A stretch of DNA of 63,956 nucleotides, filler included, from Klebsormidium nitens (lineage: Eukaryota; Plantae; Klebsormidiophyceae), in NCBI GenBank assembly GCA_000708835.1. It is 4 parts of 4 records of this genome, joined end to end, with 100 filler letters (N's around TTAATTAATTAA, not from the genome) between each part and the next. Parts side by side here need not be neighbours in the genome. Positions count along the whole stretch, not along the records: positions 49,681 to 60,958 come from DF238130.1; 3 more parts are not named here. One strand, given 5' to 3'. Made by a program: the position numbers and the translations under genes. Each line of letters begins with the position of its first letter. Positions within the stretch are counted from its first letter, which is position 1. This document shows positions 2,157-60,958 of the stretch, one piece after another. The notes below the pieces were generated by a model. The model ran no database searches. It had not been told where the DNA came from and saw only the letters and a program-made list of their open reading frames with translations.

Positions 2157-3865
2157 CTAGCAGAAGGCCTTCCTGTCCCCTGGGGAGGCCGCTCTTGGAT
2201 CACAGATCTTGCTTTCAGAGGAGTTTTGTTCTCATTACTGTGGTATTGTGTAACTGTAGGAGAGTTCTCTGTAGTTGTAGGGGAGCTTTGACACATAACA
2301 CATGTAGGGCAGCTTAGACAGCTTGTATCTGGTTGGCCGTCACCTTTTCATGACAATCATAGGTCTTGTATGAAAGAGAACGACAGCAATACTTTAGCAG
2401 AGCAGACAGCCCGCTTTTGAAATTGTGTGAGATAACTCGTTCAGATGTCGTGAACAAAACGCGTGAGGGGGATTGTAAATAGTCATTCTTTCAGTTAGAA
2501 TTCACGGGAAGGTCCGGGTAGAGAAATCATAAGAAGTTGCCTTCAGTTTGCTGGAAAGACTAATGATAGCTGACATTATTGACGGCAAAGAGCGCAAAGG
2601 ACATGGGTTTCCACGGAGATAAACAACATTCTCAATAACCTTTGATCAACATGTGTCCTTTTGACATCAGTCATCATAGAGTTGGCCCTTTCCCTTGATG
2701 TTATGGTGCATGTAGAAGGTATCTCTTCTCAAGTGCGAAATATCTAACCCTTCTGAGTGCAAAAGTTCTTTGATTGTTAAGCTCACTGAAATATGGGGGC
2801 ATCCGGCGGGCTTGTCATGTGCACATTGCAAAGTAGCTGCGCAATCTTTTGGCACATACGCAACGAAACAAGCTATCTTGCCTGGCCAAATGTCCAGAGC
2901 TCAGTATTGCATACGGATGTACCCGTTAATCGGAAGGTTAACTGCAATCGTGAAGTGGTCAATCAAAACTTACTACATGTAGCTTGACACACATTGAAGA
3001 CTACGAGACTGACTCGACCTTTGGAAGAAATTGTTTCAATAGTCGACAATAGAAAACTTTACTTTCGGGGCATTGGGGTCCGCCAACAGTCTTACGTACG
3101 CGCATGCTTCGGCTAGCCTGCCAATCATTGCAATTTTAGCCCCTCGATCATTGTTGCTGCGGCATTGCGTTGCTTAAGCGGTGCAGCAAGTAACACTTGC
3201 CAACGCCTAGTGTTGCAGCAACGCCTCGAAACCTTGCGCAACATTGCGCAACGCCCCCGCAACGCCGTGCAACGTCGCTGCAATGAGCGGCTAAAATTCC
3301 GATCTGAGTCACGACTCGGTGCTCATGCAACTTTGTGTTGACGTGGGCCTTGATCCATACATAGTATTATAACAGGTCAAAAAGCATGCAGTTCTTCGGA
3401 CATGTGTGCATGCCAGGATATGCAGGAGTACTAGACCCGCTTGCTCCGCAAACATGCAATAATCGTTTTCGATCAAGCGCCAATATTGTTGGTTGAAGTA
3501 TAGTATCAACGCTTCAAACCGAGGACTTGCACAAGCGCGGGGCATGGGAAGAATCAAACTAGAAGCCATCACAGTCAATGGTCGGTTTCTAGCCTGCTAG
3601 GTAGGTCGGCGGCATGTGGGCCCCCGGCTTTACGAGGGCACAAGGGCGTAATATGCAATATGAATCAAGGTTTTTTACGGTGAATTTGACTCGGACGCCG
3701 CGGGGAGTTTGCATGATCTCAGTGATCGACTCATGTTCATGGTTAATCTGCTTTCTATCCGACTCTAACTGTACGTATGTACGTATTGGCGCCGGGACAA
3801 TTCATTCGGACTTCTAAGTCGCGCCTTTGATTGCAATCTTTATAAAGAGATGCATGATTACCATG

Positions 3866-4206
3866 CACAAGCCACTTATATGAGGTAGCCGAGTTCCGGT
3901 CGATTGGAGGGCGAGTCCGACGATTCTTCCGGTCAATGTCTAGACAATTGGTAGGTGAGTTCTAGACTCGCGACTCGATTTATCGATGGAAAATTCAGAC
4001 GCGCGAAAACTCGGCATTAGGTCGCGGCAGTCTGCGACGACCAAATGCCGAGTTTTCGCGCGTCTGAATTTTCGATCGATCAATCGAATCGCGACCGGAC
4101 GCGAGTCTAGAACTCACCTACCAATTGTCTAGACATTGACCGGAAGAATCGTCGGACTCACCCTCCAATCGACCGGAACTCGGCTACCTCATATAAGTGG
4201 CTTGTG
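3866..4206. repeat. 341-bp foldback (long inverted repeat), MITE-like or hairpin-RNA locus
   Basis: Outer arms are about 107 bp with 1 mismatch and inner arms about 36 bp with 1 mismatch. There is an asymmetric bulge and a tiny loop near 4030. Termini are CACAA...TTGTG with TG on both flanks. Confidence 0.9.
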
Positions 4207-5185
4207 TGGACTCGTATTGACAAAGTCATTGCCAAAGTTTGATCTTTTATGTGTAATTGGCAGACATTTCAAGGCCATGCACATGTAATATGCAGGCGAC
4301 ATGTTTGGTCAGCGAGTCGGGTTCAGTTCGAGCGCCCCTGTACGTAAGCTTGTGCGCTCATTGTGCGTATAAATATGGGCCCATGGGCTTGCAGTGTGCG
4401 AAATAGCACCGTTCAACCATGCAACAATTCAGTGTTGATTGGCACAGCTTGCCGCGATCCTAATGATGCCTCTATCTTGCCGCCTCATATAGCTATGAAT
4501 TTGAAATCGCGCTTTTGTAGATTGTAATTAATGCATGCGATCGCCTTTACCCATCTTTTGTTAAGTTACTTTCATGAGGTGTGAACAGTTCTGTGGTTCG
4601 AAGTAGGTATGTTAAACGCCGATGTATCCTAATTACCGTTATAAGCATCAACGAACTGGAAGACAGTCCCCTTGAAGGACGAACAAGGGACTTATCAAAG
4701 TACGGTTTGCAAAACGCATGATCAATCATGCGTTTTGCAAAGAGAACATCATGGCACAAACTGCGACTACATGCAGTCCGGATGCACGCTGGAATCAAGT
4801 TGTAGGCTACGGCCTGTTCGGACACTCCAAACGACCACAGTTCTTTATAATTCTTCGATCTACCCGTCTTAAGTTTCTCAACAAATGCACCCCCACGCTC
4901 TCGACTGCCATGTGATATTTCTATGCCAAAATCTAGTCTTTGAATCGGTTCCATCGGCCATGAGACCCGGACATCGCCTTTGATCAAACGCTATAAGCAC
5001 AAGCGAAAAGCGAACACTTCGACTCGTATATGGAGACAAGAAGATTCTCAAGCCTACCCTCTGGTCACTTGAAAGGGGCCACACTTCTGTAACCCAATGA
5101 TCAATATCTGTCTTTAGAGACTATACAAAGAACCGGGAGCCGATGCTGAGCCAGCTTCATAAGTGGTTGCGGCATGACACTGAAG

Positions 5186-5341
5186 TTGCAAGTGTAAGGT
5201 AATACACCCGTTCCCGGCGGATGAATGAATCTTGAATCAGATGTCCAGGCTGTCGTGGTACCTTGCAAGTGTAAGGTAATACACCCGTTCCCGGCGGACG
5301 AATGAATCTTGAATCAGATGTCCAGGCTGTCGTGGTACCTT
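5186..5341. repeat. Tandem duplication, 2 x 77 bp
   Basis: TTGCAAGTGTAAGGTAATACACCCG... starts at 5186 and again at 5263, with one substitution. Confidence 0.95.
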
Positions 5342-7909
5342 TCAGCTTTCTTTCCCGTCCTGTGCTCCCACCTGAAATCAACATCTCTGTCTGGTTCAAA
5401 GATGTAAAATCCAGTGCAGACTACAATATGCTGCTCTTGAGAAGGTCCACATACCTGGTCATACTTTGACCCTGACATGGGCCCTCATGCACATAAGGCA
5501 AATGAATCTCTTCTCTGTGAAGACAATCAAGAAGCAGGGCAGATTCGAAATCGACTGCTTCAAAATTCATTAAACCTGATGTGTTGCATGTCAGATCTCA
5601 GTCCTTGGAACTAGTTAAATGGCCGACAGCATCGTACTTACCACTCTATCGTGGCGGCTCCAACCAGGGCTGCGAGTGTCAAAGCTTGAGCGTGGAGCCT
5701 GCATTTACAAGCGAAGGTAAGTGTAATAGCAATCCAATACAAATCAGCTACTTTGATTAGGGTCATCGCACAAGAATGACGCCTTCACAATTCAGAAAGC
5801 CTATGCGCAACCTTTCAATCACCTGCTGGCAACTTTCGTTCAGCTATAGCAAGCACGTGTATCAGAATCACCCACTCTAATGACCTTGTTGGGAGATTTG
5901 ATAGCCTCCGCACACTCCTGCTCCATACCGTCAGGAACTGAGACCAGATAACCGTAATGTTCCCTTTACGTAGGGGCCAGCTCTTCGATCTGTGGGGGGC
6001 TTCATCTTTGTCATTGTCAAAAATTGTAAAAGGAGAAAGGGGCAGTGCAAAAAGCCTACCTTGCATGTATCAGCTTGACACTTGGAGACAAGTGAGGCGA
6101 TTTTCGCAAGTTATAGATGAGAGATCCAGCCACCCCAGTCGCCCAAATGGTGCCTGCAGTACATACTTCCTTTATTGAGATGCCACAAACACAAGACACT
6201 TGCTTGTCAACCAGTAAAAATGAAGTTCTTTGTTTGAGATTGAGAGTCACATGGTGACCAGATCAGGTAGCCATGATAGGCGTATTCTTAGTGTATAGAG
6301 AATAATATAAATACAACCTCCCTGCTTGGGACACAGAACCGCAACCTGCTAAGTATGCTCCGATGACTTCTTGCGAGAATGAGACTGGGTGGTTGACTTT
6401 CATAAGACAATACTCAACCCCTTTAGTAAGCTTGCTAAAAAAACACTTGACAAGCCTTACAGAGAAACGATCCATAGCCCTGTCATAAAAGTACGACAGA
6501 GCAGTTATGAAGGATATGGCAGCCCCCAAGCAAGGCACCGAAAATAACAACACTGAACCCTCACTATCATCTCTCTTGCCGTTTGAATTGATGCAAGTTA
6601 AAACCCCGCAATCGCCTCTTGCCGAGTGAGATGACGCACACGACAACTATAAGATCGCAATATTGGACTGTTTTACACGATTCAGGAATGAGCGACTGAA
6701 CAAATGAACTGCTGTCATCAACCGGTGCCAGGAAAACTTGCCAAACCGGTTTGATAGAAAGTCCACCGGAACACCATCAAGTAAGTAACTCAGATTCAGC
6801 CAGCTGAACCAGTGCCATCAGTTCCCAAACACAATTGTCATCCGGGAAACAAACTAGTCAAACTTGTCATCCGAGAAACAAACTCTAGTTTTGATTATCC
6901 TAAAACCATAAGTTGATCTTGAAAATTAACATCCATTCAAAACATGTGGCCTCATAACTTTTGCATGCGCTCTGCATGACTAGATGCATGTTTTCCTGTA
7001 CAGTAGTTGCCAGCGAACGGCAGAGTACAATCAGCACATACACCATGCATGTTAGCTTGACTCCTTAGGAATGGGCCGCTTACCGACTGCTTGCAACTTG
7101 TGCTCGGTCAGCCATTCCCTGATTTGCTCGATACGTCCCTGGTCATTCTGGTCGCCTCTTTCAGTTGAAGACATAGCTTGCTTAGGCGAGGATCAGAAAT
7201 CTGTACAAAATTTGCACTAATACGTCGTGTCTGGTCAGTCCAAACAGGAAAGGCAAAAAAGTCTTGCACAATGCAGAGATAGTAGTGTTTATCCTTGCAA
7301 GCTGCAGAGATGTTTCAAGTCAAAATCTGAAGGGTTGCTGCCAGCTTTCTTTGAATCCAGGCAGCTCTTCTGTTGCGGCATGAGCTTTTGTGCACAGCAG
7401 CGCTTTAAGCAACCTCAGGTAAAGTGCCTATGTGATTGTGAATGCTGTGACCTTTGCTCCCCTCAGGCTCTGGTTTGCGCTGAAAACTGTACATGAAAAT
7501 AAACATAGCTGGTCCTTCCTCTTCAACTTCAAGTTCAACTTCAAGTTCAATTAAACCACCACCCAACCGGTACATATGGGCCAGCAATGCTGGCCAATTT
7601 CATAACTTGAACTTCACGTGTGAAGTTCAAGTGGCGCTCATGGGGCGCACGCATTTGGCACTGAAATGTAGCATTTGCCCAGCTCATAGCATGCCCAAAT
7701 CATGCTTTTCAGTGGCGGTGTCAAGCTCAGTCGCCACAGAGAGGCCTTGCAAGAAGGCGCCAGGCTTTTCAGCTCTTCAAACCACCAAGAATAGCTCAAA
7801 TAAGCTGTGTGTGGCTTTTTAGGGCTTACAGGCCTTGTTTTTGGCCGTTTGAAGAGCCGGGAAAAGGAGCGCATCTCAACGGGGCCTGTTCCAGGCGAGC
7901 AAGCCTGAC

Positions 7910-49580: not shown

Positions 49581-49696
49581 NNNNNNNNNNNNNNNNNNNN
49601 NNNNNNNNNNNNNNNNNNNNNNNNTTAATTAATTAANNNNNNNNNNNNNNNNNNNNNNNNNNNNNNNNNNNNNNNNNNNNCGGATAAGTGCGCGAC

Positions 49697-50548
49697 TCAG
49701 TATACGATATCGAGCAAAGCAGATAGCAGATACGCCATACGCGCGCGGATACTGGGACGAGTTCGATATGAAGATTCATAGACTCGAATCGTCACATACT
49801 CCTTCAACGATGTCAGAGGTCTCCGCTCGCGTGTGACCACAAAGTGGCCGGGCCGTGTCTGCTTGCACATGTATGCAACAGCTATCGGACGGCTCCTCTC
49901 ATCAGGCAGGTGAAGCACTGTCCACCAGTAGGCTCCGTTCATTGCCTTCACCCACTTGATGTCGGGCGCGTCCGGATCAGTCACTGTGCGCTTCCAGATG
50001 CTGCCCGGTATCGTGAGCCGTTTGGGCCGGACATATCCCCATTTCCTCTCGTAAAACTTATCAAACTTGGGCTGGTGGGCCCGCTGGTCGATATGAAAGG
50101 ACTCGTGTAACAAGGTGACTGCAGCCTCGCTCTCGTCATGCTGAGCAAGGAAGGACGATGGGAGCACAACAACATCATTCAAGGTGTAGGGGAATGCAAA
50201 GTCCATGAAGCTTGCAACCTTGACAAACTTCCAGGCGCGTGCCCTCAATCTCGGGCTACTATTGATGATGGAACGCAGGCGCGACCTTTCGTCCGCAGAG
50301 AAGTTGCGGACTGCCAGCATATATTGCCGGGACATTTGTCCGGGAGACGAGGCTCGCCCACCGCTCCTTGCAAGACATTCAATGGGTTTGTAGGAATTGA
50401 TCAGTTCTTGCACGCTGTGGCTGCAAAAGAGTCGCCTGGCCTCGTCTGGAGTATAGAAGACGGTTCTTGATTTAGGGAGGAGCACTAGCACCAAGCTGAC
50501 AAGCAATGCCGATACAAGCAGCAGGACATCCATGCAACACTGCGACAT
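49697..50548 (-). CDS. Membrane-anchored zincin-like metallopeptidase (HExxH), NCLDV-like
   Basis: N-terminal hydrophobic helix, FPYTLNDVVVLP, TLLHESFHIDQR, TDPD. Intronless. No third zinc ligand is evident. Confidence 0.6.
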   Translation of the reverse strand: MSQCCMDVLLLVSALLVSLVLVLLPKSRTVFYTPDEARRLFCSHSVQELINSYKPIECLARSGGRASSPGQMSRQYMLAVRNFSADERSRLRSIINSSPRLRARAWKFVKVASFMDFAFPYTLNDVVVLPSSFLAQHDESEAAVTLLHESFHIDQRAHQPKFDKFYERKWGYVRPKRLTIPGSIWKRTVTDPDAPDIKWVKAMNGAYWWTVLHLPDERSRPIAVAYMCKQTRPGHFVVTRERRPLTSLKEYVTIRVYESSYRTRPSIRARMAYLLSALLDIVY

Positions 50549-50634
50549 ATATCTACACAGGAACTATGGGCAGAGCCGGTTGAGATGGATTGAACAAACC
50601 TCTATTTACAAGGTCTTTCAACTAGTGCAGAATC

Positions 50635-51640
50635 CTACTTCAAAGCACTATAGTAACCTCCATCCTCATAACGTAAGTGTGCGGCAGGACGCCACATGGG
50701 CCCTGTAGGTCCTGCTCTAGCATCCCATGCATTTTCCTGCCACTTCCAGACCTCTTGGATGATGTCACTCATCCGGTCCCTTGCTCTGTCAAGCACTTCC
50801 TCCAGAATGTTGTAGGACAGTTCAGGTAGCTCACAGTCGTGGTTAGGGAGATCCACGACATTGCCCTCCCACGTACAACCAAAGCTGCCCAGCTCTGGAT
50901 CTTCAATGTGGTTGAAGCACTTGCGCGACCGGCAGTCCGCAGCATGGTCCTGAGAAGCCTTCTGGGCATACCTGAGAGGGTTGAATCAGCAGGAATCAGC
51001 AAAGAACTCTGACTTTATGCGAAACACAGCATAGGATCTGGCCGATGCCCACCCCTGCAACAAAACAACTGCCGCTGACACGAGCAGAGAACATAGCAGA
51101 ACAATTCACACAGCAGGAAGATAAAGCCCTCACCAGAGGTCGCACCCTGGTTTCCCCGCACTTGATGACATTCTTCTCGCACTCTCTCTCCAGATGTTGC
51201 TTCAGCTGCGATGCAGTCATCCTTGTCGAGCACCCCTCCTTGGGACAGTCGACAAAGACAGAGCTCAGCAGCCGGGACACCGCCTTATCTGGATCGTAAG
51301 TGACACCTGTCGTCTGGCACATCAAGCACCTGTTTTGATTGAGGACCGCAGGCCCTTCTGTGTGCTTCTTGCAGATATAGTTGATGACGGTGCATTGCGC
51401 ATTGGCACAGCAAGAGCGCACAACCTCTTCCCCTTGAATGTCCTTACAGACAGCGCATTCCAGGTCTTGCAGTACCGACACGACGCTTTGCTTAGAGAAC
51501 ACATACCCGCCACCCTTCAAGACATCTTCAGAGGGAGCATTGCTGGCTGTGTTGGCCTCTACATCGATGGCGCCTGAGTTTCCCGCAGTGATCTTGAGCG
51601 GAATACTGGCCTTACGCTTGCGCCCTCTTGTAGGATTCAT
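50635..51640 (-). CDS. RING-like plus TRAF-type zinc-finger protein; intron 51133-50972, apparent +1 frameshift near 51152
   Basis: Reads MNPTRGRKRK, CAVC..C..C..H..CLMC and CPKEGC..LKQHLERECEKNVIKC. Removing one A in GGGGAAACCA and splicing CTCTG|GTGAGG..CTCTCAG|G gives CGEPGCDLWYAQKASQDHAADC, continuing to the stop at 50635. Confidence 0.6.
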
Positions 51641-51804
51641 CTTGAGGTGAGACGGGCAAACCTGAAAAGCTGTTTTGTTTGAGTGCCAGTGAATGGGCAT
51701 GTCTCCTGTGTGAGCCTCTTTCCTGGCCCATGAAGCTATGCCCTTGAAGCCACACAAGGCTCTCAGTCACTATTCATCACCTACATGCACCGTCGCTCAC
51801 CTGG

Positions 51805-52005
51805 CTATACCCGCAGGTGAGTCGGATCACCCAAAGACAGCGTCGGTTTGCCGTCGATCCCCCCAGGACACGCACGGGTGAGCCGTCGATCTCTTTGGGA
51901 TACCGGCAGGTGAGTCGCGATCCTTCAAATCACCGTCGATCGCCCGGAGACGCCCACAGGTAAGTCGTCGATCACTTAAGGACACCCCCGGGTGACTCTA
52001 GCTCA
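51805..52005 (+). repeat. Five spaced copies of the motif GGAYAC-N3-5-CRGGTGAGTCGTCGATC in the divergent intergenic region
   Basis: Cores at about 51814, 51875, 51907, 51957 and 51989, plus half-sites CCGTCGATC at about 51851 and 51933. Confidence 0.65.
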
Positions 52006-52291
52006 CTCAATGGAACCACCGCTCACCCCAAGATACCCTAAGGTAACCTGCGGCTCTACGCGCGCGCCGGGCGCATAGCGCCGCAATGGACGGAGCTCGG
52101 GCTGCGCGAGCCGAACTTCAATCCCCCAACCCTGCACAAAATTGCACGATTGCAGCCCAGAAGGCCTTGAGAGAATGCCGAGCACCACAAGAGGAGCTGC
52201 CAGCCTAGTACCATCAGATACCACCGTGCGCCACCATGTTTGAGTAATCAAGAAGCTTTCCTTTCGATGGCAGGCCTCAAACAGGACAAGC

Positions 52292-53389
52292 ATGGGGCAC
52301 GTGAGCGCCCTTCCCTCCGAGGTGCTGAGCATCATTCTCAACAAGGTGGCGACGGACGAGGACAGCCAGGTGCAGGATCTGTGCAGGTCCGAAGCCGTGT
52401 GCAAGGAGTGGAAGGAGGTTGCTCGGGATTCCTGCTGGCATGCGCTACTCAAGAAGTTGCTGGGTCTTTCCGACCCTTGCCGCTGGGACGAGGCTGCTTG
52501 GTTGATCAGCCGCTTCCACAGGGTCAAAGGTGGAAGATTTGCTGCTTCAGCTGCAAAGCAGCTCTTCAAGCTTCACGAGTCTGATCTCCAGCTACTGCAG
52601 CCTGCCAAGCAACGGGTGCGGCAGCACGACACTCAAGTGTTCCTCATCAGGCACTATGATTTTGCCGACCTGCTCAGAGCCGCCCTAGCAAAGTATGGCA
52701 GCGTGGAGCTCTACAGGGAGCACGTCTGGAGGTGCAGCGAGAGGGCAAGCAAGAGGGCCAGCACCGCCTTCCAGAAGGGGGTCGCGCGTCGTGAGCAGGT
52801 TGGCGAAGCACTCAAGTCATTTGACGAGGGGGTGCGTGGCCTGGTTGCCGACGCCGTAGAGAACTACGTGGTCAGGAACCGAGGGACACTGGAGGGCGTG
52901 TTCAGGAGGGCAACAAACATCAGGGAGCGCAGAGAAGACATATCCTCCTTGCTGTCAGAGGGGGGGCTCAAGCTGGAGGACGTGCCTCTGTGCGTGATGT
53001 CCTTCCAGTTGTTTGAAAAGGGCCTTATGGACAGAGGGCGCATCGTGGACGAGTTGGCAAGGCACGTGGCCCTGAGTGAGGGGCTGAAGGCAAGGGGGGT
53101 CGTCTTCAACACCTATTCCACGAGTCTCTGTGCCTGTCGACGCTACGTGCGCTTCTCCGGACAGCTCGCCCCCCTTCTGGATGCTGTCGAGATCCGCGAG
53201 TTCTACAGGTCACGCATGGGCTGCCTCGATGGGGAGAACCAGGCCCGCGCGCTGGCCAGGTGGATGCAAGGGAGGACCGAGCTCGAGATCCTGCAAGATG
53301 CGCCCGAAGCAGTCTGTCAGACAGAAGAGTTTCAGCAGTGCCTGCTCAGGAGGTTTCCCGCGGCAGATGTCTCCGTCAAGAAAGCGTAG
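52292..53389 (+). CDS. F-box protein with XPA-C-terminal-like domain
   Basis: F-box LPSEVLSIILNKV..LCR..VCKEW..VA, then AKQLFKLHESDL..HYDFADL..AALAKYGS..RR..V..AL. Intronless, 365 aa. Confidence 0.65.
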   Translation: MGHVSALPSEVLSIILNKVATDEDSQVQDLCRSEAVCKEWKEVARDSCWHALLKKLLGLSDPCRWDEAAWLISRFHRVKGGRFAASAAKQLFKLHESDLQLLQPAKQRVRQHDTQVFLIRHYDFADLLRAALAKYGSVELYREHVWRCSERASKRASTAFQKGVARREQVGEALKSFDEGVRGLVADAVENYVVRNRGTLEGVFRRATNIRERREDISSLLSEGGLKLEDVPLCVMSFQLFEKGLMDRGRIVDELARHVALSEGLKARGVVFNTYSTSLCACRRYVRFSGQLAPLLDAVEIREFYRSRMGCLDGENQARALARWMQGRTELEILQDAPEAVCQTEEFQQCLLRRFPAADVSVKKA

Positions 53390-53403
53390 CACTTGATAGG
53401 CGC

Positions 53404-54084
53404 ATGTATACCTTCCTGTCCTATGCTGACGGAGAACCTTACCTGTCACGAGCCCGTGAGCTAGTGAAGAGTGCAATTGAACCAGGCAGATTTGACTGCT
53501 CGAGGTTGGCCACCAAGGCCGACCTGGACCCTTTGTTCTGCATAGAAAACCGCAACATACTGTCTGCCAAGAGGGGAGGCGGCCTGTGGCTGTACAAGCC
53601 TTATGTGATCCTGAAGACTCTCCTCTCAATGCAAGAAGGAGACGTGCTGTGCTACTGCGATTCTCTGTACCTGTTTCGGCGCAACTTCCGCCCATACATT
53701 GATGAATGGCTGAAGGACAGCAGCATTGGGCTGGCTCGCAACAAGCCCAACGAGGGATCCTTTTCCGAGCTGGAGTGGACAAAGATGGATTCATATCACA
53801 TCATGGGCGTGAACTTTGAGCATGCATCCAAGACGCCGCAGGTGTGGGGCGGCTTCTTAGTGCTTCGCAAGAGCCTGTTCACGATCCGCTTTGTCTCTGC
53901 GTGGCTGACATACTGCACGGACTATCGCCTGATCAGTGACTGTCCGAGCTCGTTGCCGGACTGTTCGGGCTTCAAAGAGCACCGCCATGACCAGTCCGTT
54001 CTATCCCTCCTCGCCAAACGGTGGGGAATCCGCTTCACCGAGTTCCCCCCCGGCCTTCTGCTCAACCTGCGAAAACCGCAGTAA
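53404..54084 (+). CDS. Soluble GT-A-like glycosyltransferase (bacterial/giant-virus type)
   Basis: Reads RGGGLWLYKPYVI, YCDS, WTK, QVWGGF and EHRHDQSVLSLL. No signal anchor, intronless, starts 14 bp after the F-box stop. Confidence 0.7.
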   Translation: MYTFLSYADGEPYLSRARELVKSAIEPGRFDCSRLATKADLDPLFCIENRNILSAKRGGGLWLYKPYVILKTLLSMQEGDVLCYCDSLYLFRRNFRPYIDEWLKDSSIGLARNKPNEGSFSELEWTKMDSYHIMGVNFEHASKTPQVWGGFLVLRKSLFTIRFVSAWLTYCTDYRLISDCPSSLPDCSGFKEHRHDQSVLSLLAKRWGIRFTEFPPGLLLNLRKPQ

Positions 54085-54097
54085 GACAACCAAGCTA

Positions 54098-54634
54098 CTA
54101 GTAATCACTTCGGACTCTGTTGAAGTTATTTTTGGCTTTGTTATAGTTGACCCCCGCTCCTCGATACGGCGCGCTGTTGCGAGGCCTTGAATTGTTCGAG
54201 ATGCGCCGAAGTGGACCTCCAGAGGGCATCAACCGAATGTTGTTGTGCAGGCGAGGTTTCTGGTTGACGATATGTTCGATTGTGTCATCGTCCATGAGAT
54301 ATCCAGGAATCAACAGCAGTGGAAAGTCTGACTCTTCCTCGCCCTGGCGATTCTGGCGCAATATGATCTCCGCTATCAGGGGTGCCTTTGGAAGGAAATA
54401 ACGCACTGCTTCTGAGATGGACAGAGCTCTCTTGTTGTTTCGGTTGCTCCCCTGATGACCCTTTTCAAGAACAAACGTCTGATTGCCTGTATATCTCAAG
54501 AATTCAAACTCAGCACCGTCCTTCTGCAGAGTCACAATGCTTAGTTTGCATTCTGCATCGGGGACATGCACTGAAGCAATCAGCTCAAGACCGTGTCTTA
54601 TCAGCCCAATCGGATCTGCTTGCAAGTATGCCAT
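54098..54634 (-). CDS. Hypothetical protein (ORFan, Asn/Arg-rich tail)
   Basis: 178-aa intronless ORF tightly packed between its neighbours. Confidence 0.55.
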   Translation of the reverse strand: MAYLQADPIGLIRHGLELIASVHVPDAECKLSIVTLQKDGAEFEFLRYTGNQTFVLEKGHQGSNRNNKRALSISEAVRYFLPKAPLIAEIILRQNRQGEEESDFPLLLIPGYLMDDDTIEHIVNQKPRLHNNIRLMPSGGPLRRISNNSRPRNSAPYRGAGVNYNKAKNNFNRVRSDY

Positions 54635-54656
54635 GTACTACAAGACAAAGGTAAAA

Positions 54657-55607
54657 TCACCTACACTCTCTCTCACAAGTCAGGGCTTTGACGATGAATG
54701 AATTCACGATCAGCGATGCTGACAAGTGCGGCAGGTGGCCGCTTGTGGGCAGTACTTCCAATTCCGAATTGCGAATCGCTCTTGCCATGAATTGGGCAAC
54801 CTCGAGTGGAACGGCAACGTCGTTCTGGCTCTGCAGGATCATGCAAGGCGGGTGCACTTCCGGCAGTATGTGACGCAAGTCGATCCTGAAGATCATGCTG
54901 CAAGTGGCGAGAGCGACATCGGGCCGGATGTGCAGGAGCCCCTCCGTGAACTTGCGGATTGCCGGCTGGTTTGGCTCCCCAATTGCAACGGGGGCGAAGC
55001 CCTTTGCCCAGTCTGTGTAGCCTCTCTCCATCGATGAGAAGAGCCCCCTCAGGTCGTTCTCTGAAAAGCCACCGACGTAGCCCTCCTTCGGATCATTGAG
55101 GTACCTAGGTGAGGATGCAAGAAGCACGATCCTTTCAAAGAGGTGCGGCCGTGTCACGCTTGCCAGAAGGCCGATCATCCCGGAGACGGAATGGCCCACG
55201 AAGGCGCAGGTCTTGATTCCGAGGGCGTCTGCAATGTCAAGGAGATCGCTCGCGTACGCGTCTATTGTCCGGTACCGCTTGAAATCGAACGCCCTGCTCC
55301 CGCGGCTTCTTGCGGAACGGAAGCAGCCAAGGAGAGGCCGTTTCATGTGCCTCTTCTCGAAGCGCTGGAATGCGGCGCTTAGCCCCGCGTCATTGAGATC
55401 GAAGGCGTCGCTCACGGTGCCCACGTAGGTGAGGTTGTAGCTGACGACCTGGAATCCCCGGCGCACCAGGAGCGGCTCGAGCTCCCTCCAGACGCTCCTG
55501 TCCGTCCCAAAACCGTGGCCTAGTAGGACAATGCGCGAGCCCTCATCTCCAGTCACTCTGACGCGGTGCCTCTCCAATATTGATTTTGCGGGGGGCCGTC
55601 TACCCAT
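54657..55607 (-). CDS. KAI2: KAI2/D14-family alpha/beta-hydrolase (karrikin/strigolactone receptor-like), intronless
   Basis: Reads GHGFGTDRSVW, FDFKRY, FVGHSVSGMIG (Ser), SPRYLND..YVGGF, W..GFAP, RPDVAL..IF, NDVAVP (Asp) and GHLPHLS (His). The symbol denotes family membership, not proven orthology. Confidence 0.88.
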   Translation of the reverse strand: MGRRPPAKSILERHRVRVTGDEGSRIVLLGHGFGTDRSVWRELEPLLVRRGFQVVSYNLTYVGTVSDAFDLNDAGLSAAFQRFEKRHMKRPLLGCFRSARSRGSRAFDFKRYRTIDAYASDLLDIADALGIKTCAFVGHSVSGMIGLLASVTRPHLFERIVLLASSPRYLNDPKEGYVGGFSENDLRGLFSSMERGYTDWAKGFAPVAIGEPNQPAIRKFTEGLLHIRPDVALATCSMIFRIDLRHILPEVHPPCMILQSQNDVAVPLEVAQFMARAIRNSELEVLPTSGHLPHLSASLIVNSFIVKALTCERECR

Positions 55608-55623
55608 TGCTCAATACACATGC

Positions 55624-56052
55624 TCAAGAAAGGTGGTCGACCATCTGCTGAAGGAAGGCGTTCAGCTCCGCCTGGTTGTCCTCGTCAACCTCTTCCCACT
55701 GAGCGATGAACGCCTGCTTCTGATCTGCGGGCAGGCCCCTCCATTTGGCAAAGATTACCCTCTGCTTTTCGGCAGGCACCCCAAAAACCGTCAGCTGCTG
55801 CTCTCCAACTGAGAAGACGTCGAGAGGGATGTCTTCAAACGAGTTGCCCAAGACGTCCTTCTTCAGCTCCGGGTTGACGACCTGAGCCCTCCGCTGCCCT
55901 GCATAGGCCCTTGCGCTCCCGTCGTCTAGAACGACCACAGGCGTGTTGGATAGGCCCAGCAGGTTGGTCCTTTGAACGGTCCCAAAATCCTCCACTTCCC
56001 TGACAAATGCACGTGTGCCAGGTGCGACGAGGGGGGTCTGCTCTGATGCCAT
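55624..56052 (-). CDS. Hypothetical protein (ORFan)
   Basis: MASEQTPLV...VDHLS*, about 142 aa, protein-like composition, ending 16 bp upstream of the KAI2-like ATG. Confidence 0.55.
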   Translation of the reverse strand: MASEQTPLVAPGTRAFVREVEDFGTVQRTNLLGLSNTPVVVLDDGSARAYAGQRRAQVVNPELKKDVLGNSFEDIPLDVFSVGEQQLTVFGVPAEKQRVIFAKWRGLPADQKQAFIAQWEEVDEDNQAELNAFLQQMVDHLS

Positions 56053-56418
56053 GTCTGTAGTATACAGGCCACAAATTATTTGAAGGCACAACTCTTGTCA
56101 CTGCACGTGACTGCCCCCTTTGAGAGTGGTGTGTATGCAGACCAAGCAAGACTTCCCATCGATGTTACTGTATCAATGTGCACCACGTTCGACTCGACTG
56201 GCCTTTGAGGCATATGCATCTGACCGCTGTCCGCAAGGGGGGCCGGCCTCTCTGGGACTTTGGCATCTCGTGAACATCTGTCACGGTGTTCACTCGAGTC
56301 TTTTCCAGCAAAGTGAATCGTGACCAGGGGCCCGGTCCACTGTGGACAGATCAACCGATCTGTCGCAGGCGCACCCAGCACCTCTGTAGGAGCGTCAAAG
56401 CCTTTCTCGCAGAGGCGT

Positions 56419-56778
56419 TCAAGGTCTTGGTGGCATGTCGTTGGGTGCAAGCAGCAGCACATCCGGGCCACGAACTGACTCCAACCCATTTCTCATACCA
56501 TCTCTTTTTGATTTCAATGAAGTAGACGCACATGTTGCCAGCCTTGGGAACTGTCTCGAGCTCCTATGAAAGCGGTCCAAACACGGAGCCCATGTTGTCT
56601 GCCCCTTGCACTTTGCAATGCAATCGTTCAAGTACATGCGCTCATCAGCACACACCGGTGAAAGATACGGTGGACAGCGGCATGGGAGAGGATACGGGTC
56701 GACAGGTGTCATGAGCACGCTTGTCATGGTGGCTGCTGACAGCACGAGTGCCCGGATGGATTGCTCAACAGCAGACAT
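56419..56778 (-). CDS. Small secreted Kazal-like protease inhibitor
   Basis: Hydrophobic leader, then CRCPPYLSPVCADERMYLNDCIAKC-x7-C. This is the Kazal cysteine pattern, one residue short between Cys3 and Tyr. Confidence 0.5.
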   Translation of the reverse strand: MSAVEQSIRALVLSAATMTSVLMTPVDPYPLPCRCPPYLSPVCADERMYLNDCIAKCKGQTTWAPCLDRFHRSSRQFPRLATCASTSLKSKRDGMRNGLESVRGPDVLLLAPNDMPPRP

Positions 56779-57409
56779 ACAGATGACCACCATTTTTGCA
56801 CAGGCCACGCACGTCCGCATCATCACATTATGTGGATTTATGGTAACTCTGAGACTACATGGACCATTTGGGCTACCCATACTTCATCCAACGGACGAGA
56901 TCAGCACCGGCATCCTTTTTCCATCTGGAGCAACTCGACCTTGCAGAGAGGGGGGAAATCCCTCAAAAACACGAGCCTATCAAGGAGAAACACCAACAAA
57001 GCAAGGAGCGAAAATGGTTCCGAGACCCGTGCCGAGCCTGCGACCCTTTTGAAAGCAGCTACACTTCATAAAACGACTCCTCTACTGTGCATCTTTTATT
57101 ACCATTTTCGCCCAAACNNNNNNNNNNNNNNNNNNNNGGAATTAACCTATTGAAAAGGTAATCATATAATCGTGAAGGGTCTCTTGAGAGCTACAGAAGC
57201 AGTTCGAGTTGCCCCTGTTGCGCTGCATTGTTGAGGACCTCAGAAACCCACCACCAATTTGCTTGTAAAGCTGTCCCATCTCGCCACATCCTCAAACAAT
57301 AAGGACGGCCAAGATAAACAATAAGGACGGCATCTTGGCCGATTCACGACATACAAGGCACGCGATTTATATAAAAGAGCGCATGTTGGCTCACAACCAC
57401 CCGCAGAGA

Positions 57410-57645
57410 AGGTGTGGAGTCCACCTCAGCCTCACCAGCAGGTGTCTTTTTGAGATCGACGGTCGACTGAGGAGTTTTCATGGGTGTCCGACGGCTCACA
57501 AGCCCACAGGAACGGTGTGGGAAGGTGCGGAGTCCGCGTCAGCCTCTCACCGGCGGGTGGCTTTTTGAGATCGACGGTCGACCGACGAGTTTTCAGTTGT
57601 GTCCGACGGCTCACAGGCCCGCAGAACCGGTGTGGGAAGGTGCGG
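57410..57645. repeat. About 2 x 115-bp tandem repeat with palindromic TCGACGGTCGA core, partial third copy at about 57720
   Basis: TTTTTGAGATCGACGGTCGAC occurs at about 57446 and 57562, and GACGGCTCACA(A/G)GCCC occurs three times. Confidence 0.8.
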
Positions 57646-57853
57646 AAGAGTGACTGGCGGTGAGGGAAGGTGCGTCTGGCTTCACCGCCGGGTGTTATTA
57701 AGTGAACTGAAGTGTGCTTGACGGCTCACAAGCCCGTAAACCCGGTGATGCTGGTGCAAAAGGGTGATTCTTTGCTTTAGAGACTGAGGGTATAGGTGCT
57801 GTGGGTACAAGGAAAGCCATTTCCTTTCAAAGGAACAAAGCACTTTCCCTGCG

Positions 57854-58093
57854 ATGGATAACTCTCAGATCATCTCTCCAACACCGCAGCGGACAATCCC
57901 TGTCGTAGCACTCCAAGCAGAAGCAACCAATACAAGTGCAAAGCAACACATGCTGACAGCAGATAAGCTTTCCTGGCTTTATGCTTCTTTGAGCGTCCTG
58001 GAACGCCACGAGCGGATCACCAAAGAAGAGCCGCTGCGGATTCAGCTGCAAAGGAAACGCCTGCTGCAATTGGCAACCAGAGACCCTGAGTGA
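57854..58093 (+). CDS. Possible small hypothetical protein upstream of dUTPase
   Basis: 79-aa ORF ending 34 bp before the dUTPase ATG. No domain recognised. Confidence 0.3.
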   Translation: MDNSQIISPTPQRTIPVVALQAEATNTSAKQHMLTADKLSWLYASLSVLERHERITKEEPLRIQLQRKRLLQLATRDPE

Positions 58094-58127
58094 GGGCAGC
58101 AGGCCTTTAGCCAAGAGACTGTGATCT

Positions 58128-58964
58128 ATGGAGACAACGCCTACAGACGCCCTGTTGGTGAAGAGGCTTGTTCCAGAGGCAACACTCCCAAAGTGCGCAT
58201 CCCCAGGAGATGCAGGCTATGACCTCAGCGCAGCTGCAGACCAGAGCATCGCATCTGGCAGCTGGGGTCTCGTCAGGACGGGGATATCCATTGCTGTCCC
58301 TGAAGGGACGTACGGGCGCGTCGCTCCACGCTCTGGCCTCGCTATCAAGAACGGTATTGTCGTTGGGGCAGGAGTGGTTGACAGGTAAGACAGGACTGGA
58401 AAGACCTCTCGTGTGTCTCCTGCAACTATGCTGGCGATTGTCGAGGGATGCAGCAGCTGAAGCCAATGGTGAAGATGCATGCAGGTGCATTGGAGGCTCC
58501 TGAAGGTTTTGCCCGCTAGTGCCTCGGTTACTTCAGTGCAGTGCATGGGAGTATGCAGAGCATGCTGAGCCTCTGGTTCCTTTCATTCAGCATACAAACG
58601 CCGGCTACTTGCTGTGCAATCTGAGGATATAGGTGCTGGGCTTAGCAGCTGAGATTGATGAAGCTTCACGGTTTCCAGCTTAGAACTGCATCTTGGAGCA
58701 GAGGTTGTTTGTGAAAGTGTACCTCCTCCCTGTCCTTGTTGCATCCATGCACGCATGAATACATGCCTACTCTTGTGCAGGTCGTACCGGGGGGAGGTTG
58801 GCGTCGTGCTCTTCAATCATGGCCCAGGAACGTTCCAGGTCAGGAAGGGAGACAGGATTGCTCAGCTCATCTTGGAGAAGATTGCCAGCCCGCCAGTCGT
58901 CGAGGTGGAGTCTTTGAGCGTCACACACCGGGGTGCAGGAGGCTTTGGAAGTACAGGGGTTTGA
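58128..58964 (+). CDS. dut: Trimeric dUTPase, 146 aa, one intron (58385-58780)
   Basis: All five motifs are present: AGYDL, PRSG, GVVDR|SYRGE, GDRIAQL and [10 protein letters not shown]. The intron is AG|GTAAGA...TGTGCAG|G in phase 2. Confidence 0.95.
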
Positions 58965-59121
58965 AGCAGCAGGGCTTAGGAAGAAGGGAGGGCAGGCAAA
59001 GCACAAGGATTTCACAGTTTGCAAGAGAGGCTTGCATACATACATATCAGCAAACTAGCCGGGGGTCCAAGACTCTTGTACTACAATCTGTTATAATTTC
59101 TTTCTTCTCCAGGGAAGGAAT

Positions 59122-59542
59122 AATAACACATTAGTAGTACAAAGTTTCCCCTTTGGTCTCCAGTCGCCGATATGTATGTATGTAAGGCCATACCCCCAAA
59201 AGATGTAATATAGTAATTGACTTTTTGGAGAAGAGAATATAACAGATTAGCAGTACAGAGTTTCCCCTTTGGTCTCCAGTCGCCGATATGTATGTATGTA
59301 AGGCCATACCCCCAAAAGATGTAATATAGTAATTGACTTTTTGGAGAAGAGAATATAACAGATTAGCAGTACAGAGTTTCCCCTTTGGTTTCCAATCGCC
59401 GATATGTATGTATGTAAGGCCATACCTGAAAGAGACGCAATATAGTAATTGACCTTTTGAAGAAGAGAACATAACAGATTAGTAGTACAGAGTTTTCCCT
59501 TTGGTTTCCTGTTGCCGATATGTATGTATGTAAGGCCATGCC
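59122..59542. repeat. AT-rich 116-bp tandem array (about 3.6 copies)
   Basis: AGTTTCCCCTTTGG starts at 59143, 59259, 59375 and 59491. Each unit carries (TATG)3. Copies diverge toward the right. Confidence 0.95.
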
Positions 59543-59580
59543 TGGGGGAACAAATGCCAGAAAGCGAAACTGCCACTAAC

Positions 59581-60958
59581 TTAGTCGGAATCACTTGACT
59601 CAAAGTCGGTCTGGTCGTCCTCAGAGTCCGTCTCGCTCTTCTGAACCATGGTGTCTGGCTGGTAGTACGGGTTCAGTAGCCTATTGTTGAACGGCCCCTT
59701 GGGCTTTGGCACGTAGTAGCGTATTACCATGGTTAGGGAGCAATTCACACCCATGAAGTCATAAAGAAAGCCGTCAGAACCCCAGAATTGGAGCGTCATG
59801 CAAGGCAGTTTGCCGATCGGGTGAAAAGGGCGCGGCTGAATCGTCGAAAAGTCAAATCTTGAGTCAGTATAGCCAAGGATTGAAAGCTTAAACTTTGCCA
59901 ATGGGTAGTTGAATGGCTGAAAGGCCCTCGAGCGGTACATGTTGCTCTCAATCTCGGGGATCCTGAGGACCGCATAAGGCAGGCCCGTCAGGTCGTACAT
60001 GCCAGGGGCAATGAGGGTTTGAGCTCCGACGGTGATGCTTGCCCGCCCGACGACGAGTGCGTGATCGTCTGCCAGAGGCGCCCACGAAACCTGATTTGTT
60101 GAGTTGATGACTGAGAAAGCTGGAATGTCAGGGGCGCTCGCAGCAACCAGAGGCACGTTGCCTGAGGCCCCAAAGTCCAATACTAGCCAGTACACGCTCG
60201 ATTGGTCGAGGTACGGTGAGGTCCTCTGGTCGAAAGAGATCGTGGCAAGGCCGCCCGTGCTGGCAATTGCGCTCCCGCTTGCAATGGAGGTCAGGAGCGG
60301 ACCGTTCGGCCCTGTAGGGGCGACCCGCCAAGCAAAGGGCGTGCCGGGTTGTACAACGGCAACTTGCAGATTCTCCAAGATACCTGACGACTGGTCCGAG
60401 AGCAGGCGCAGGGCGTAGTACCGGGAAGGGGGGGCGGGCTGAGGCACCTCCGGTGAGTAGTTTGCATGCAACCACGAGTAGATTGTGGTGGAGACAGGGT
60501 TGGTGATCATCGAATAGAAGCGCTGCGGCTCGGCAGGGTCCGCATAAAAGGAGGAGCCCGCCTTCCTGTGATTGTATGCGAGCTCGTCAAAGCCAATGAT
60601 GTGATTTATGGTCGAATTTGCCATGTCAAAGGAAAAGCGGCGAGGGCAACTGAATTTCAATGTCAGCCGCAGGTTGGTCGGGGCTGACTCGAAGGTGGTT
60701 GTAACCCCCAAGGGATTCAGCACACTGTTGAGGGCGTCAAGCATCGTGGTGTCTGTATGACTTCCCATCGCGACTCTGACCACGTGCGTCGCATTGTCGG
60801 GCGTCGTGAGAGTTAAAGTATTGCTGTTCTCGCTGACTGTAAATTGCGTTCTTGGAATTTGTGCATCCAAAACGTCCACTGAGAACACATTTCGAAATGG
60901 CTCTGCGAAGTCGACCCGGAACTCTGACGGTGTGGGCCAGACGGTTCGGTCGCGGTCC
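59581..60958 (-). CDS. NCLDV penton/minor-capsid-like protein (5' end in the gap)
   Basis: The frame is open up to the gap. N-terminal DRDRTVWPTPSEFRVDFAEPFRNVFSVDVLDAQIPRTQFTV and C-terminal HPIGKLPCMTLQFWGSDGFLYDFMGVNCSLTMVIRY match the recalled pattern of the NCLDV single-jelly-roll penton family. There is a large central insertion. Intronless. Confidence 0.7.

Follow-up and report, generated by a model that had tools for sequence, protein, structure and literature searches.

A gene block of giant-virus type in the streptophyte alga Klebsormidium nitens carries KAI2L, an α/β-hydrolase gene of the D14/KAI2/RsbQ ("DKR") family. The window analysed here is a 63,956-nucleotide stretch of K. 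nitens DNA, and its positions 49681-60958 are the entire 11,278-base scaffold DF238130.1 of strain NIES-2285 (assembly GCA_000708835.1). KAI2 and D14 serve as receptors in a major signalling system of plants, and their family is thought to have entered plants once, from proteobacteria, by horizontal transfer. We consider it probable that KAI2L represents a DKR hydrolase lineage of giant viruses infecting, or once infecting, Klebsormidium-like streptophyte algae, present in K. nitens as an endogenous element. The virus-associated branch, marked by an insert in the hydrolase, is apparently undescribed; endogenous giant-virus elements (GEVEs) of K. nitens as such are known. The gene, its insert and its catalytic codons lie as follows.

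54657..55607, minus strand: intact, intron-free gene of the KAI2/D14/RsbQ-family α/β-hydrolase (KAI2L), 316 aa, ATG start.
55293..55409, minus strand: clade-specific insert, residues 67-105, between strand β4 and helix αB.
55188..55190, minus strand: codon of the nucleophile Ser140 (G-H-S-V-S elbow), an invariant column; codon read in the DNA.
54819..54821, minus strand: codon of the catalytic Asp263, an invariant column; codon read in the DNA.
54735..54737, minus strand: codon of the catalytic His291, an invariant column; codon read in the DNA.

A preliminary description of the locus had reported an intact, intronless open reading frame (ORF) of 316 aa with a complete Ser-Asp-His triad, set 16 and 22 bp from its neighbours, and both statements hold. 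The gaps follow from the ORF coordinates (16 bp to 55624..56091 and 22 bp to 54098..54634), and Ser140, Asp263 and His291 occupy invariant columns in family alignments of 19 and 31 sequences. In a phmmer search of PDB sequences, KAI2L matched KAI2, D14, DAD2 and HTL proteins with E-values of 8e-72 to 1e-45 and Bacillus subtilis RsbQ at 1.8e-49; Pfam Abhydrolase_1 and Abhydrolase_6 match it as well. The AlphaFold2 model computed from the 31-sequence alignment has a mean predicted local distance difference test (pLDDT) value of 87.4, exceeding 95 in the core, and contains four lid helices (residues 183-195, 197-209, 214-225 and 229-241) with pLDDT >95. The best Foldseek matches of this model were all D14/KAI2 structures, with template-modelling (TM) scores of 0.93-0.95 (target-normalised) and 37-43% identity. 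The top match by both sequence and fold was 7ukb, an ancestral reconstruction of a plant α/β-hydrolase. By these comparisons of sequence and predicted fold, KAI2L is a genuine DKR-family hydrolase, similar to its relatives far beyond chance. It appears catalytically equipped as a serine hydrolase, and its family membership suggests that it may bind and hydrolyse butenolides.

Residues 67-105 of KAI2L have no match in any solved relative, and the PDB sequences align with the protein in two stretches on either side. Every member of the clade described below carries an insert at this place, 34-39 aa long and with 8-11 Lys+Arg versus 2-6 Asp+Glu, and no insert was found in any streptophyte or bacterial homologue examined. 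Within the clade, 2 of 46 insert columns are conserved, compared with 111 of 252 in the core, and pLDDT falls below 50 in this part of the model. The insert behaves like a flexible basic loop and marks the clade, as does an extra residue at position 50 that is unique to it. The possibility that residues 67-105 are an unspliced in-frame intron was considered and rejected, because every close relative has an insert of different sequence at that place; the annotators' model also keeps it.

Word-indexed and exhaustive protein searches recovered insert-bearing relatives with 45-87% identity (P0001, P0003-P0005, P0007-P0012, P0019, P0300 and K. nitens P0182), and the remaining plant or bacterial matches are only ~35-49% identical to KAI2L. 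The clade is monophyletic with 99% neighbour-joining (NJ) bootstrap, and its genes occur in two contexts.

Context A: DUF5901 ... 155-aa ORF - KAI2L - variable stretch - 274-aa ORF - F-box-like; found in the window and on contigs L005/6, L007-9 and L095.
Context B: protein kinase - x - TBP - DNA ligase - KAI2L - ... - ABC1, with an mRNA triphosphatase gene and a TnpB-like gene nearby; carried by L001/2 (SRR16630549/50), L003 (ERZ25039476) and a second K. nitens scaffold, DF237743.1.

Contigs L005/6 and L007-9 come from SRR14092358-60 and are 77-90% identical to the window at the DNA level, and the context-A copy on L095 (ERZ25039498) is accompanied by a SNF2 helicase gene. The arrays are compact (L001 holds 17 genes in 14.7 kb), and GC content is 52-55% throughout the contigs examined. 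The product of the DUF5901 gene on the KAI2L scaffold matches chain P1v1 of PDB 8h2i (5.9e-15), the variant of the penton protein from which the unique, spike-bearing vertex of chlorovirus PBCV-1 is built (PMC9617893). Its relatives are 480-496 aa long, and the annotated model in the window reaches the scaffold end. Contigs with the nearest DUF5901 relatives also encode Bro-N, ThyX, an HNH endonuclease and a helicase (L099) or Glyco_transf_25, ABC1, SWIB, DUF5767 and P8_CR (L101).

Taken together, the two contexts, the P1v1 homologue, the virus-type genes on related contigs and the compact arrays support an origin of the block from a giant virus of the Nucleocytoviricota type, as judged from gene content. 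The block had been called giant-virus-like in the preliminary description, and this stands, with a penton-variant homologue on the same scaffold and relatives of KAI2L beside TBP, DNA ligase and mRNA triphosphatase genes. The SRR14092358-60 series contains at least three different context-A copies, 87%, 77% and 72% identical to the window protein. This suggests that one genome holds several related insertions or that several related viruses were present in one sample.

The ratio of non-synonymous to synonymous substitution rates (dN/dS) for KAI2L is 0.10-0.19 between the window and its context-A relatives and 0.07 between two context-B genes. Similar values were obtained for the 155-aa ORF (0.11-0.13, at 86-90% protein identity in L005-L009) and the 274-aa ORF (0.13-0.19, at 73-88% identity in L005 and L007-9). 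Because purifying selection appears uniform on KAI2L and these two unrelated ORFs, divergence in replicating viruses would fit better than decay after insertion. KAI2L is intact in the window, L005, L001, L003 and L095, and has one in-frame stop in L007. The second K. nitens copy (L010, DF237743.1 7571-16219, a stretch that contains 2,915 N) is 82% identical to the L001 protein and is broken into two frames with one stop. Flanking it are a TBP/DNA-ligase model on one side and an ABC1 model on the other, and a DDE_3 transposase domain is part of the hydrolase model. Among the other genes, ligase and ABC1 of L003 were called in pieces, and DUF5901 of L095 in two. Giant-virus endogenisation in K. 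nitens has been reported twice (PMC12344493; PMC11244446), in one case with methylation enrichment on virus-derived genes, and the window block is most likely part of such a GEVE.

Several observations weigh against a viral and endogenous origin of the block. The 11.3-kb scaffold has no host flank, so that the case for integration of the KAI2L copy comes from the second locus and from published work. In the 11-21-kb stretches read of the KAI2L-carrying contigs, which for L001 are part of a 36.7-kb contig, no major capsid protein, family-B DNA polymerase, A32 ATPase or VLTF3 was found. Neither IMG/VR nor the JGI metagenome collection contains a clade member, and hence there is no recognised free virus genome with the gene: scanning IMG/VR with the family alignment gave a single match, 33% identical and outside the clade, and scanning it with the penton protein alone gave no matches. 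Some of the Logan/ENA contigs could be algal insertions rather than virions. The neighbouring dUTPase gene has an intron of the spliceosomal type, which would also fit a gene processed by the host. Spliceosomal-type introns occur in nucleus-dependent giant viruses.

The nuclear-type intron of the dUTPase gene, together with a scaffold that is short, unplaced and interrupted by a 20-N gap, could also be accommodated if KAI2L were an ordinary host paralogue, or if the scaffold were chimeric or a contaminant and its viral neighbourhood artefactual. We regard this as very improbable in view of the recurrence of the same gene order in independent assemblies from at least four sample series, the tight spacing of 16 and 22 bp, the virion protein gene on the same scaffold, the second, decayed copy beside TBP and DNA ligase in the same genome, the GEVEs published for K. 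nitens and the separate KAI2 of the host.

The canonical KAI2 of K. nitens/flaccidum is kfl00006_0340, located on another large scaffold (Bythell-Douglas et al., PMC5490202). It is 57.3% identical to Arabidopsis KAI2 (PMC5490202), compared with 39-40% for KAI2L in structural alignments. The preliminary description had proposed looking for a separate host KAI2; this gene is present and is much more plant-like than KAI2L. Two by-eye readings of low precision put the identity of kfl00006_0340 to KAI2L at ~45% over ~247 positions of a column-trimmed alignment and its Asp-His stretch at 21 residues; this identity is not higher than for other homologues from streptophytes or bacteria. The trees and computed comparisons below were made without kfl00006_0340: a search from a Chlorokybus protein returned RsbQ-type matches only and did not retrieve the canonical host KAI2, and cluster look-ups for it gave hornwort, fern, palm, grass and bacterial sequences only.

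It had been suggested that the signatures of KAI2L are plant-type rather than RsbQ-type and that a streptophyte-infecting virus had captured a host receptor. The first suggestion is not supported, as each quoted signature is the majority state in 43 bacterial homologues: H31, G32, W200 and Y169 occur in 43/43, F33 in 36/43 and R168 in 35/43. Nor are the "D14-like" DV and GHLPH marks of plants, since Val or Ile after the catalytic Asp and His after GHLP are common bacterial states. The clade scores equally well against profile hidden Markov models (HMMs) of 19 crown streptophyte and of 19 bacterial sequences (279-302 versus 278-310 bits). A bacterial genome collection yielded at least 598 relatives, the best at 41-44% identity, and the best genome matches are spread over several bacterial phyla at 38-44%. 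The most identical full-length match outside the clade, P0123 (49%), has a bacterial two-component/RND neighbourhood and is directly upstream of a histidine kinase gene.

To place the clade, we used our own maximum-likelihood (ML) code with a BLOSUM62-derived reversible rate matrix, four gamma categories, ML branch lengths and resampling of estimated log-likelihoods (RELL). The clade was attached in turn to every edge of three fixed NJ backbones, with no full tree search; its internal root in one placement run was the last NJ join. On each of the three backbones, the clade attaches best at, or beside, the branch parting bacteria from crown streptophyte KAI2/D14, with a likelihood weight of 0.67 on the clean backbone; with basal taxa included, the best edges lie beside Chlorokybus, one Dongia sequence and one sequence from a Leptophrys transcriptome. 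Edges inside the crown streptophytes are 9-14 log-likelihood (lnL) units worse (RELL <=2%) and deep bacterial edges 4-13 units worse, whereas a position beside the Dongia / Dongiaceae / Terriglobia group is just 0.9-1.8 units worse than the best edge. This analysis disfavours a position inside crown KAI2/D14 and would put the clade at the junction of bacteria and streptophytes.

A length character bears on the same question. The clade and the bacteria have 22 residues in the stretch from the catalytic Asp to His, and Chara, Coleochaete and land plants have 23; the extra residue is present in 94% of the streptophytes sampled and in 0 clade or bacterial sequences. On this sampling, the marker excludes a KAI2 source of the Phragmoplastophyta type and is compatible with an early-diverging alga, because the canonical KAI2 of Klebsormidium, read by eye, also lacks the extra residue. 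Capture of a host streptophyte receptor is thus not supported, given the equal HMM scores, the placement outside crown KAI2/D14 and the far more plant-like KAI2 of the host.

Two sources of the gene remain to be weighed. It is possible, but short of probable, that a giant virus captured it from a streptophyte algal host, with strong divergence and acquisition of the insert afterwards. All known settings of the clade indicate Klebsormidium-like hosts; the first ML run attaches the clade best beside Chlorokybus and a transcriptome sequence that is probably algal; 7ukb, the top match in both sequence and fold, reconstructs an ancestral plant hydrolase; and the one-residue marker is compatible with early-diverging algae as donors. 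This source is opposed by the unacceptable attachments inside crown streptophytes (9-14 lnL units, RELL <=2%), by a host KAI2 that at ~45% (by eye, trimmed alignment) is no closer than the bacterial homologues at 41-49%, by equal HMM affinity to the plant and bacterial sets and by "plant" signatures that are family-wide. We hold just as tentatively that the gene passed straight from a bacterium into the virus lineage, as a proteobacterial RsbQ-type gene and independently of the transfer that founded the plant family. Here the Dongia / Dongiaceae / Terriglobia position is merely 0.9-1.8 lnL units worse, P0123 (49%), the most identical full-length match outside the clade, is bacterial, the clade shares the bacterial Asp-His length and common bacterial residues at positions 264 and 294, and fungi provide documented cases in which eukaryotes acquired such hydrolases independently. 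Yet positions deep in bacterial groups are 4-13 lnL units worse, the insert is in no bacterial sequence, and no specific donor group emerges, with the best genome matches falling in several phyla at 38-44%.

A third scenario would make the clade an old virus-borne lineage, maintained by selection in giant viruses of early-diverging streptophyte algae and branching where RsbQ meets KAI2; the virus would then have been the vehicle, or an early recipient, of the transfer from bacterium to alga on which karrikin/strigolactone-type perception in plants was founded. We think this quite unlikely. Whatever the source, a virus-carried branch at the bacterial/plant junction adds a third player to the question of how the family originated, one that is testable from sequence data, and its carrier host is one of the earliest-diverging streptophyte algae. 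Two Chlorokybus proteins, P0121 ("D14a") and P0285 ("D14"), have Ala in place of His before the nucleophile Ser and Gly in place of Arg in P-R-Y. Their nearest relatives outside Chlorokybus are of the RsbQ type (~42%), and both sit at the unstable base of the family tree.

We hypothesize, tentatively and by analogy with characterised family members, that KAI2L would use the Ser-His-Asp triad under its four-helix lid to bind a small signal molecule during infection, a butenolide-like or related ester, and to hydrolyse it. Such hydrolysis could serve to sense or to remove a host or environmental signal, and the basic, flexible insert might mediate a contact or a localisation specific to the virus. 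Integrated in the K. nitens genome, the copy would most likely be silent cargo rather than a working host receptor. Published work indicates that a KAI2-MAX2 module may exist in streptophyte algae, but that SMXL targets are missing there; because of this lack, a simple decoy of the plant pathway is not established for K. nitens. The absence of SMXL targets from algae would also suit a general auxiliary enzyme of the esterase/lipase type with no link to butenolide-type signals, as would the many generic α/β-hydrolases that giant viruses encode, the weak, sub-cut-off NCBIfam matches of KAI2L to enol-lactonases, BioH and similar enzymes, and the lack of a nearby gene for MAX2 (the KAI2 partner) or RsbP (the RsbQ partner). 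Such a general role is nevertheless unlikely. Catalogued viral hydrolases are 9-18% identical and superpose poorly, whereas D14/KAI2 structures superpose with TM scores of 0.93-0.95, lid included, and the pocket-forming and lid regions are strongly conserved across the family, with 111 of 252 core columns conserved within the clade.

Compared with known systems, KAI2L shares the fold, the four-helix lid and the triad with streptophyte KAI2/D14/DLK2 (PDB 4ih1, 4ih4, 3vxk, 6azb), but differs in its position outside the crown clade, its basic insert, two smaller length differences, the lack of introns and its link to viruses. With bacterial RsbQ-type proteins (B. subtilis RsbQ, PDB 1wom, and proteobacterial homologues) it has equal profile affinity, identity of up to 44-49% and the same Asp-His length. 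In contrast to these, it has no adjacent signalling partner, either an RsbP-type phosphatase or a sensor kinase, and its neighbours are unannotated ORFs, an F-box gene and virus genes. Fungal CpD14-like (CDL) hydrolases acquired from actinobacteria (bioRxiv 10.1101/2025.03.14.642314) set a precedent for pre-adapted butenolide-type hydrolases spreading horizontally on independent occasions, but they belong to a different α/β-hydrolase lineage with a different lid, and no virus was involved; viruses are not mentioned in that report. Generic giant-virus α/β-hydrolases catalogued in BFVD (from Satyrvirus, Yasminevirus, EhV-86 and others) are likewise virus-encoded and of the same fold class, but show 9-18% identity and TM scores (query-normalised) of <=0.72, and none is of the D14/KAI2/RsbQ type.

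The K. nitens GEVEs already reported (PMC12344493; PMC11244446) concern the same genome and a methylated type of element; in those parts of their text and supplements that were examined, neither the KAI2L gene nor scaffold DF238130.1 is mentioned. No paper in the literature searched combines KAI2, strigolactone or karrikin with giant-virus terms. The earlier remark that no virus-borne KAI2 or D14 was known is supported, as none came to light in that literature, in BFVD, in IMG/VR or in the JGI metagenome collection. KAI2L would give a first indication of a karrikin/strigolactone-type signalling gene in algal giant viruses.

The other features of the scaffold are listed in order of position.

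49697..50548, minus strand: 283-aa ORF, no family match.
50996..51757, minus strand: ORF with a weak TRAF-type zinc-finger match (Pfam zf-TRAF, E = 0.0014, under the curated cut-off).
52292..53389, plus strand: F-box-like protein gene, conserved in the neighbourhood (Pfam F-box-like, 3.8e-07).
53260..54084, plus strand: 274-aa ORF (probable ATG at 53404), conserved neighbour.
54098..54634, minus strand: 178-aa ORF, probably no conserved gene; the stretch is variable among relatives.
55624..56091, minus strand: 155-aa ORF upstream of KAI2L (142 aa from the probable ATG), conserved.
56419..56880, minus strand: ORF with a weak Kazal-type inhibitor match (Pfam Kazal_2, E = 0.00077, under the cut-off), partly conserved in L005.
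57118..57137: 20-N scaffold gap.
57408..57646: tandem repeat, 115 bp x 2.1.
58128-58384 (exon 1) and 58781-58964 (exon 2), plus strand: dUTPase gene, with a GT..AG intron at 58385-58780.
59114..59539: AT-rich tandem repeat, 116 bp x 3.7, ~42% GC.
59581..60958, minus strand: capsid-vertex (penton variant, DUF5901) gene, 5' end cut by the scaffold edge (Pfam DUF5901, 4.9e-65).

The immediate neighbours of KAI2L differ in how well they are conserved. The 155-aa ORF has no family match. On the other side, the 178-aa ORF had been taken for a flanking ORFan, but it has no homologue at any collinear locus and does not qualify as a conserved gene; the stretch that corresponds to it measures ~116 bp in L005 and ~2.8 kb in L007-9. 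The description of the 274-aa ORF as a viral-type glycosyltransferase could not be verified, as no match was found in Pfam, NCBIfam, PHROGs or PDB sequences, and its single-sequence AlphaFold2 model is unusable (mean pLDDT 33).

The F-box-like gene holds the same relative place in L095 (12316-13368). It keeps its position two genes from KAI2L in context A, and KAI2/D14 proteins signal via an F-box protein. A MAX2-like partner was considered and rejected: the PDB search gave generic F-box matches only (best E = 0.043) and none to MAX2/D3, and no leucine-rich-repeat or MAX2-like part was found.

The two ORF pieces of the dUTPase gene, searched as separate exons, cover positions 2-70 and 67-129 of the Pfam dUTPase profile. 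The annotators' spliced model of 146 aa has exactly the length implied by an intron at 58385-58780, and the gene is split at the same point in L007-9, where the intervening sequence is not conserved. On these grounds, the dUTPase gene is read as unbroken, with one canonical GT..AG intron of 396 nt. This intron seems to be older than the divergence of the copies, which share its position and neither its sequence nor its length. Downstream of the dUTPase gene, the 116-bp array (59114-59539) is partly kept at the ends of L007-9.

The public protein models of this locus call for caution. The 523-aa K. nitens model P0002 is a chimera in which residues 14-151 of the 155-aa ORF are followed by residues 54-312 of KAI2L and then by downstream sequence; the first 53 residues of KAI2L, which include the oxyanion-hole motif, are missing from it. 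The public models of the F-box gene (551 aa) and of the leftmost genes (442 aa) also resemble fusions of neighbouring ORFs. With a chimeric model and a second, broken copy in the genome, surveys of "algal KAI2" made from the annotated proteome can miscount or misplace virus-derived copies.

Related contigs carry further genes of interest. L099, whose capsid-vertex gene is the closest relative of the one in the window, encodes at 3812-6082 a hybrid histidine kinase (HisKA, HATPase_c and response-regulator receiver domains) beside ThyX, an HNH endonuclease, Bro-N and the capsid-vertex relative. A TnpB-like gene (Cas12f1-like_TNB) is found at 17343-19103 of L003, on the contig with a context-B copy. 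In IMG/VR, an RsbQ-like gene occupies positions 10001-10753 of L004 (IMGVR_UViG_649633106_000001), a 64-kb uncultivated viral genome (UViG) extracted from the genome of an isolate; the gene presumably lies in a prophage region or in flanking bacterial DNA. Four longer JGI matches (L110, L111, L112 and L130) were tried as clade members and rejected, as they have no insert and come from an unrelated low-GC organism. Their GC content is ~30%, and the frame of the RsbQ-like gene is interrupted under the standard code; L112 has merely 4 ORFs of >=120 aa in 18.7 kb, and a reassigned stop codon is suggested for the organism behind these contigs.

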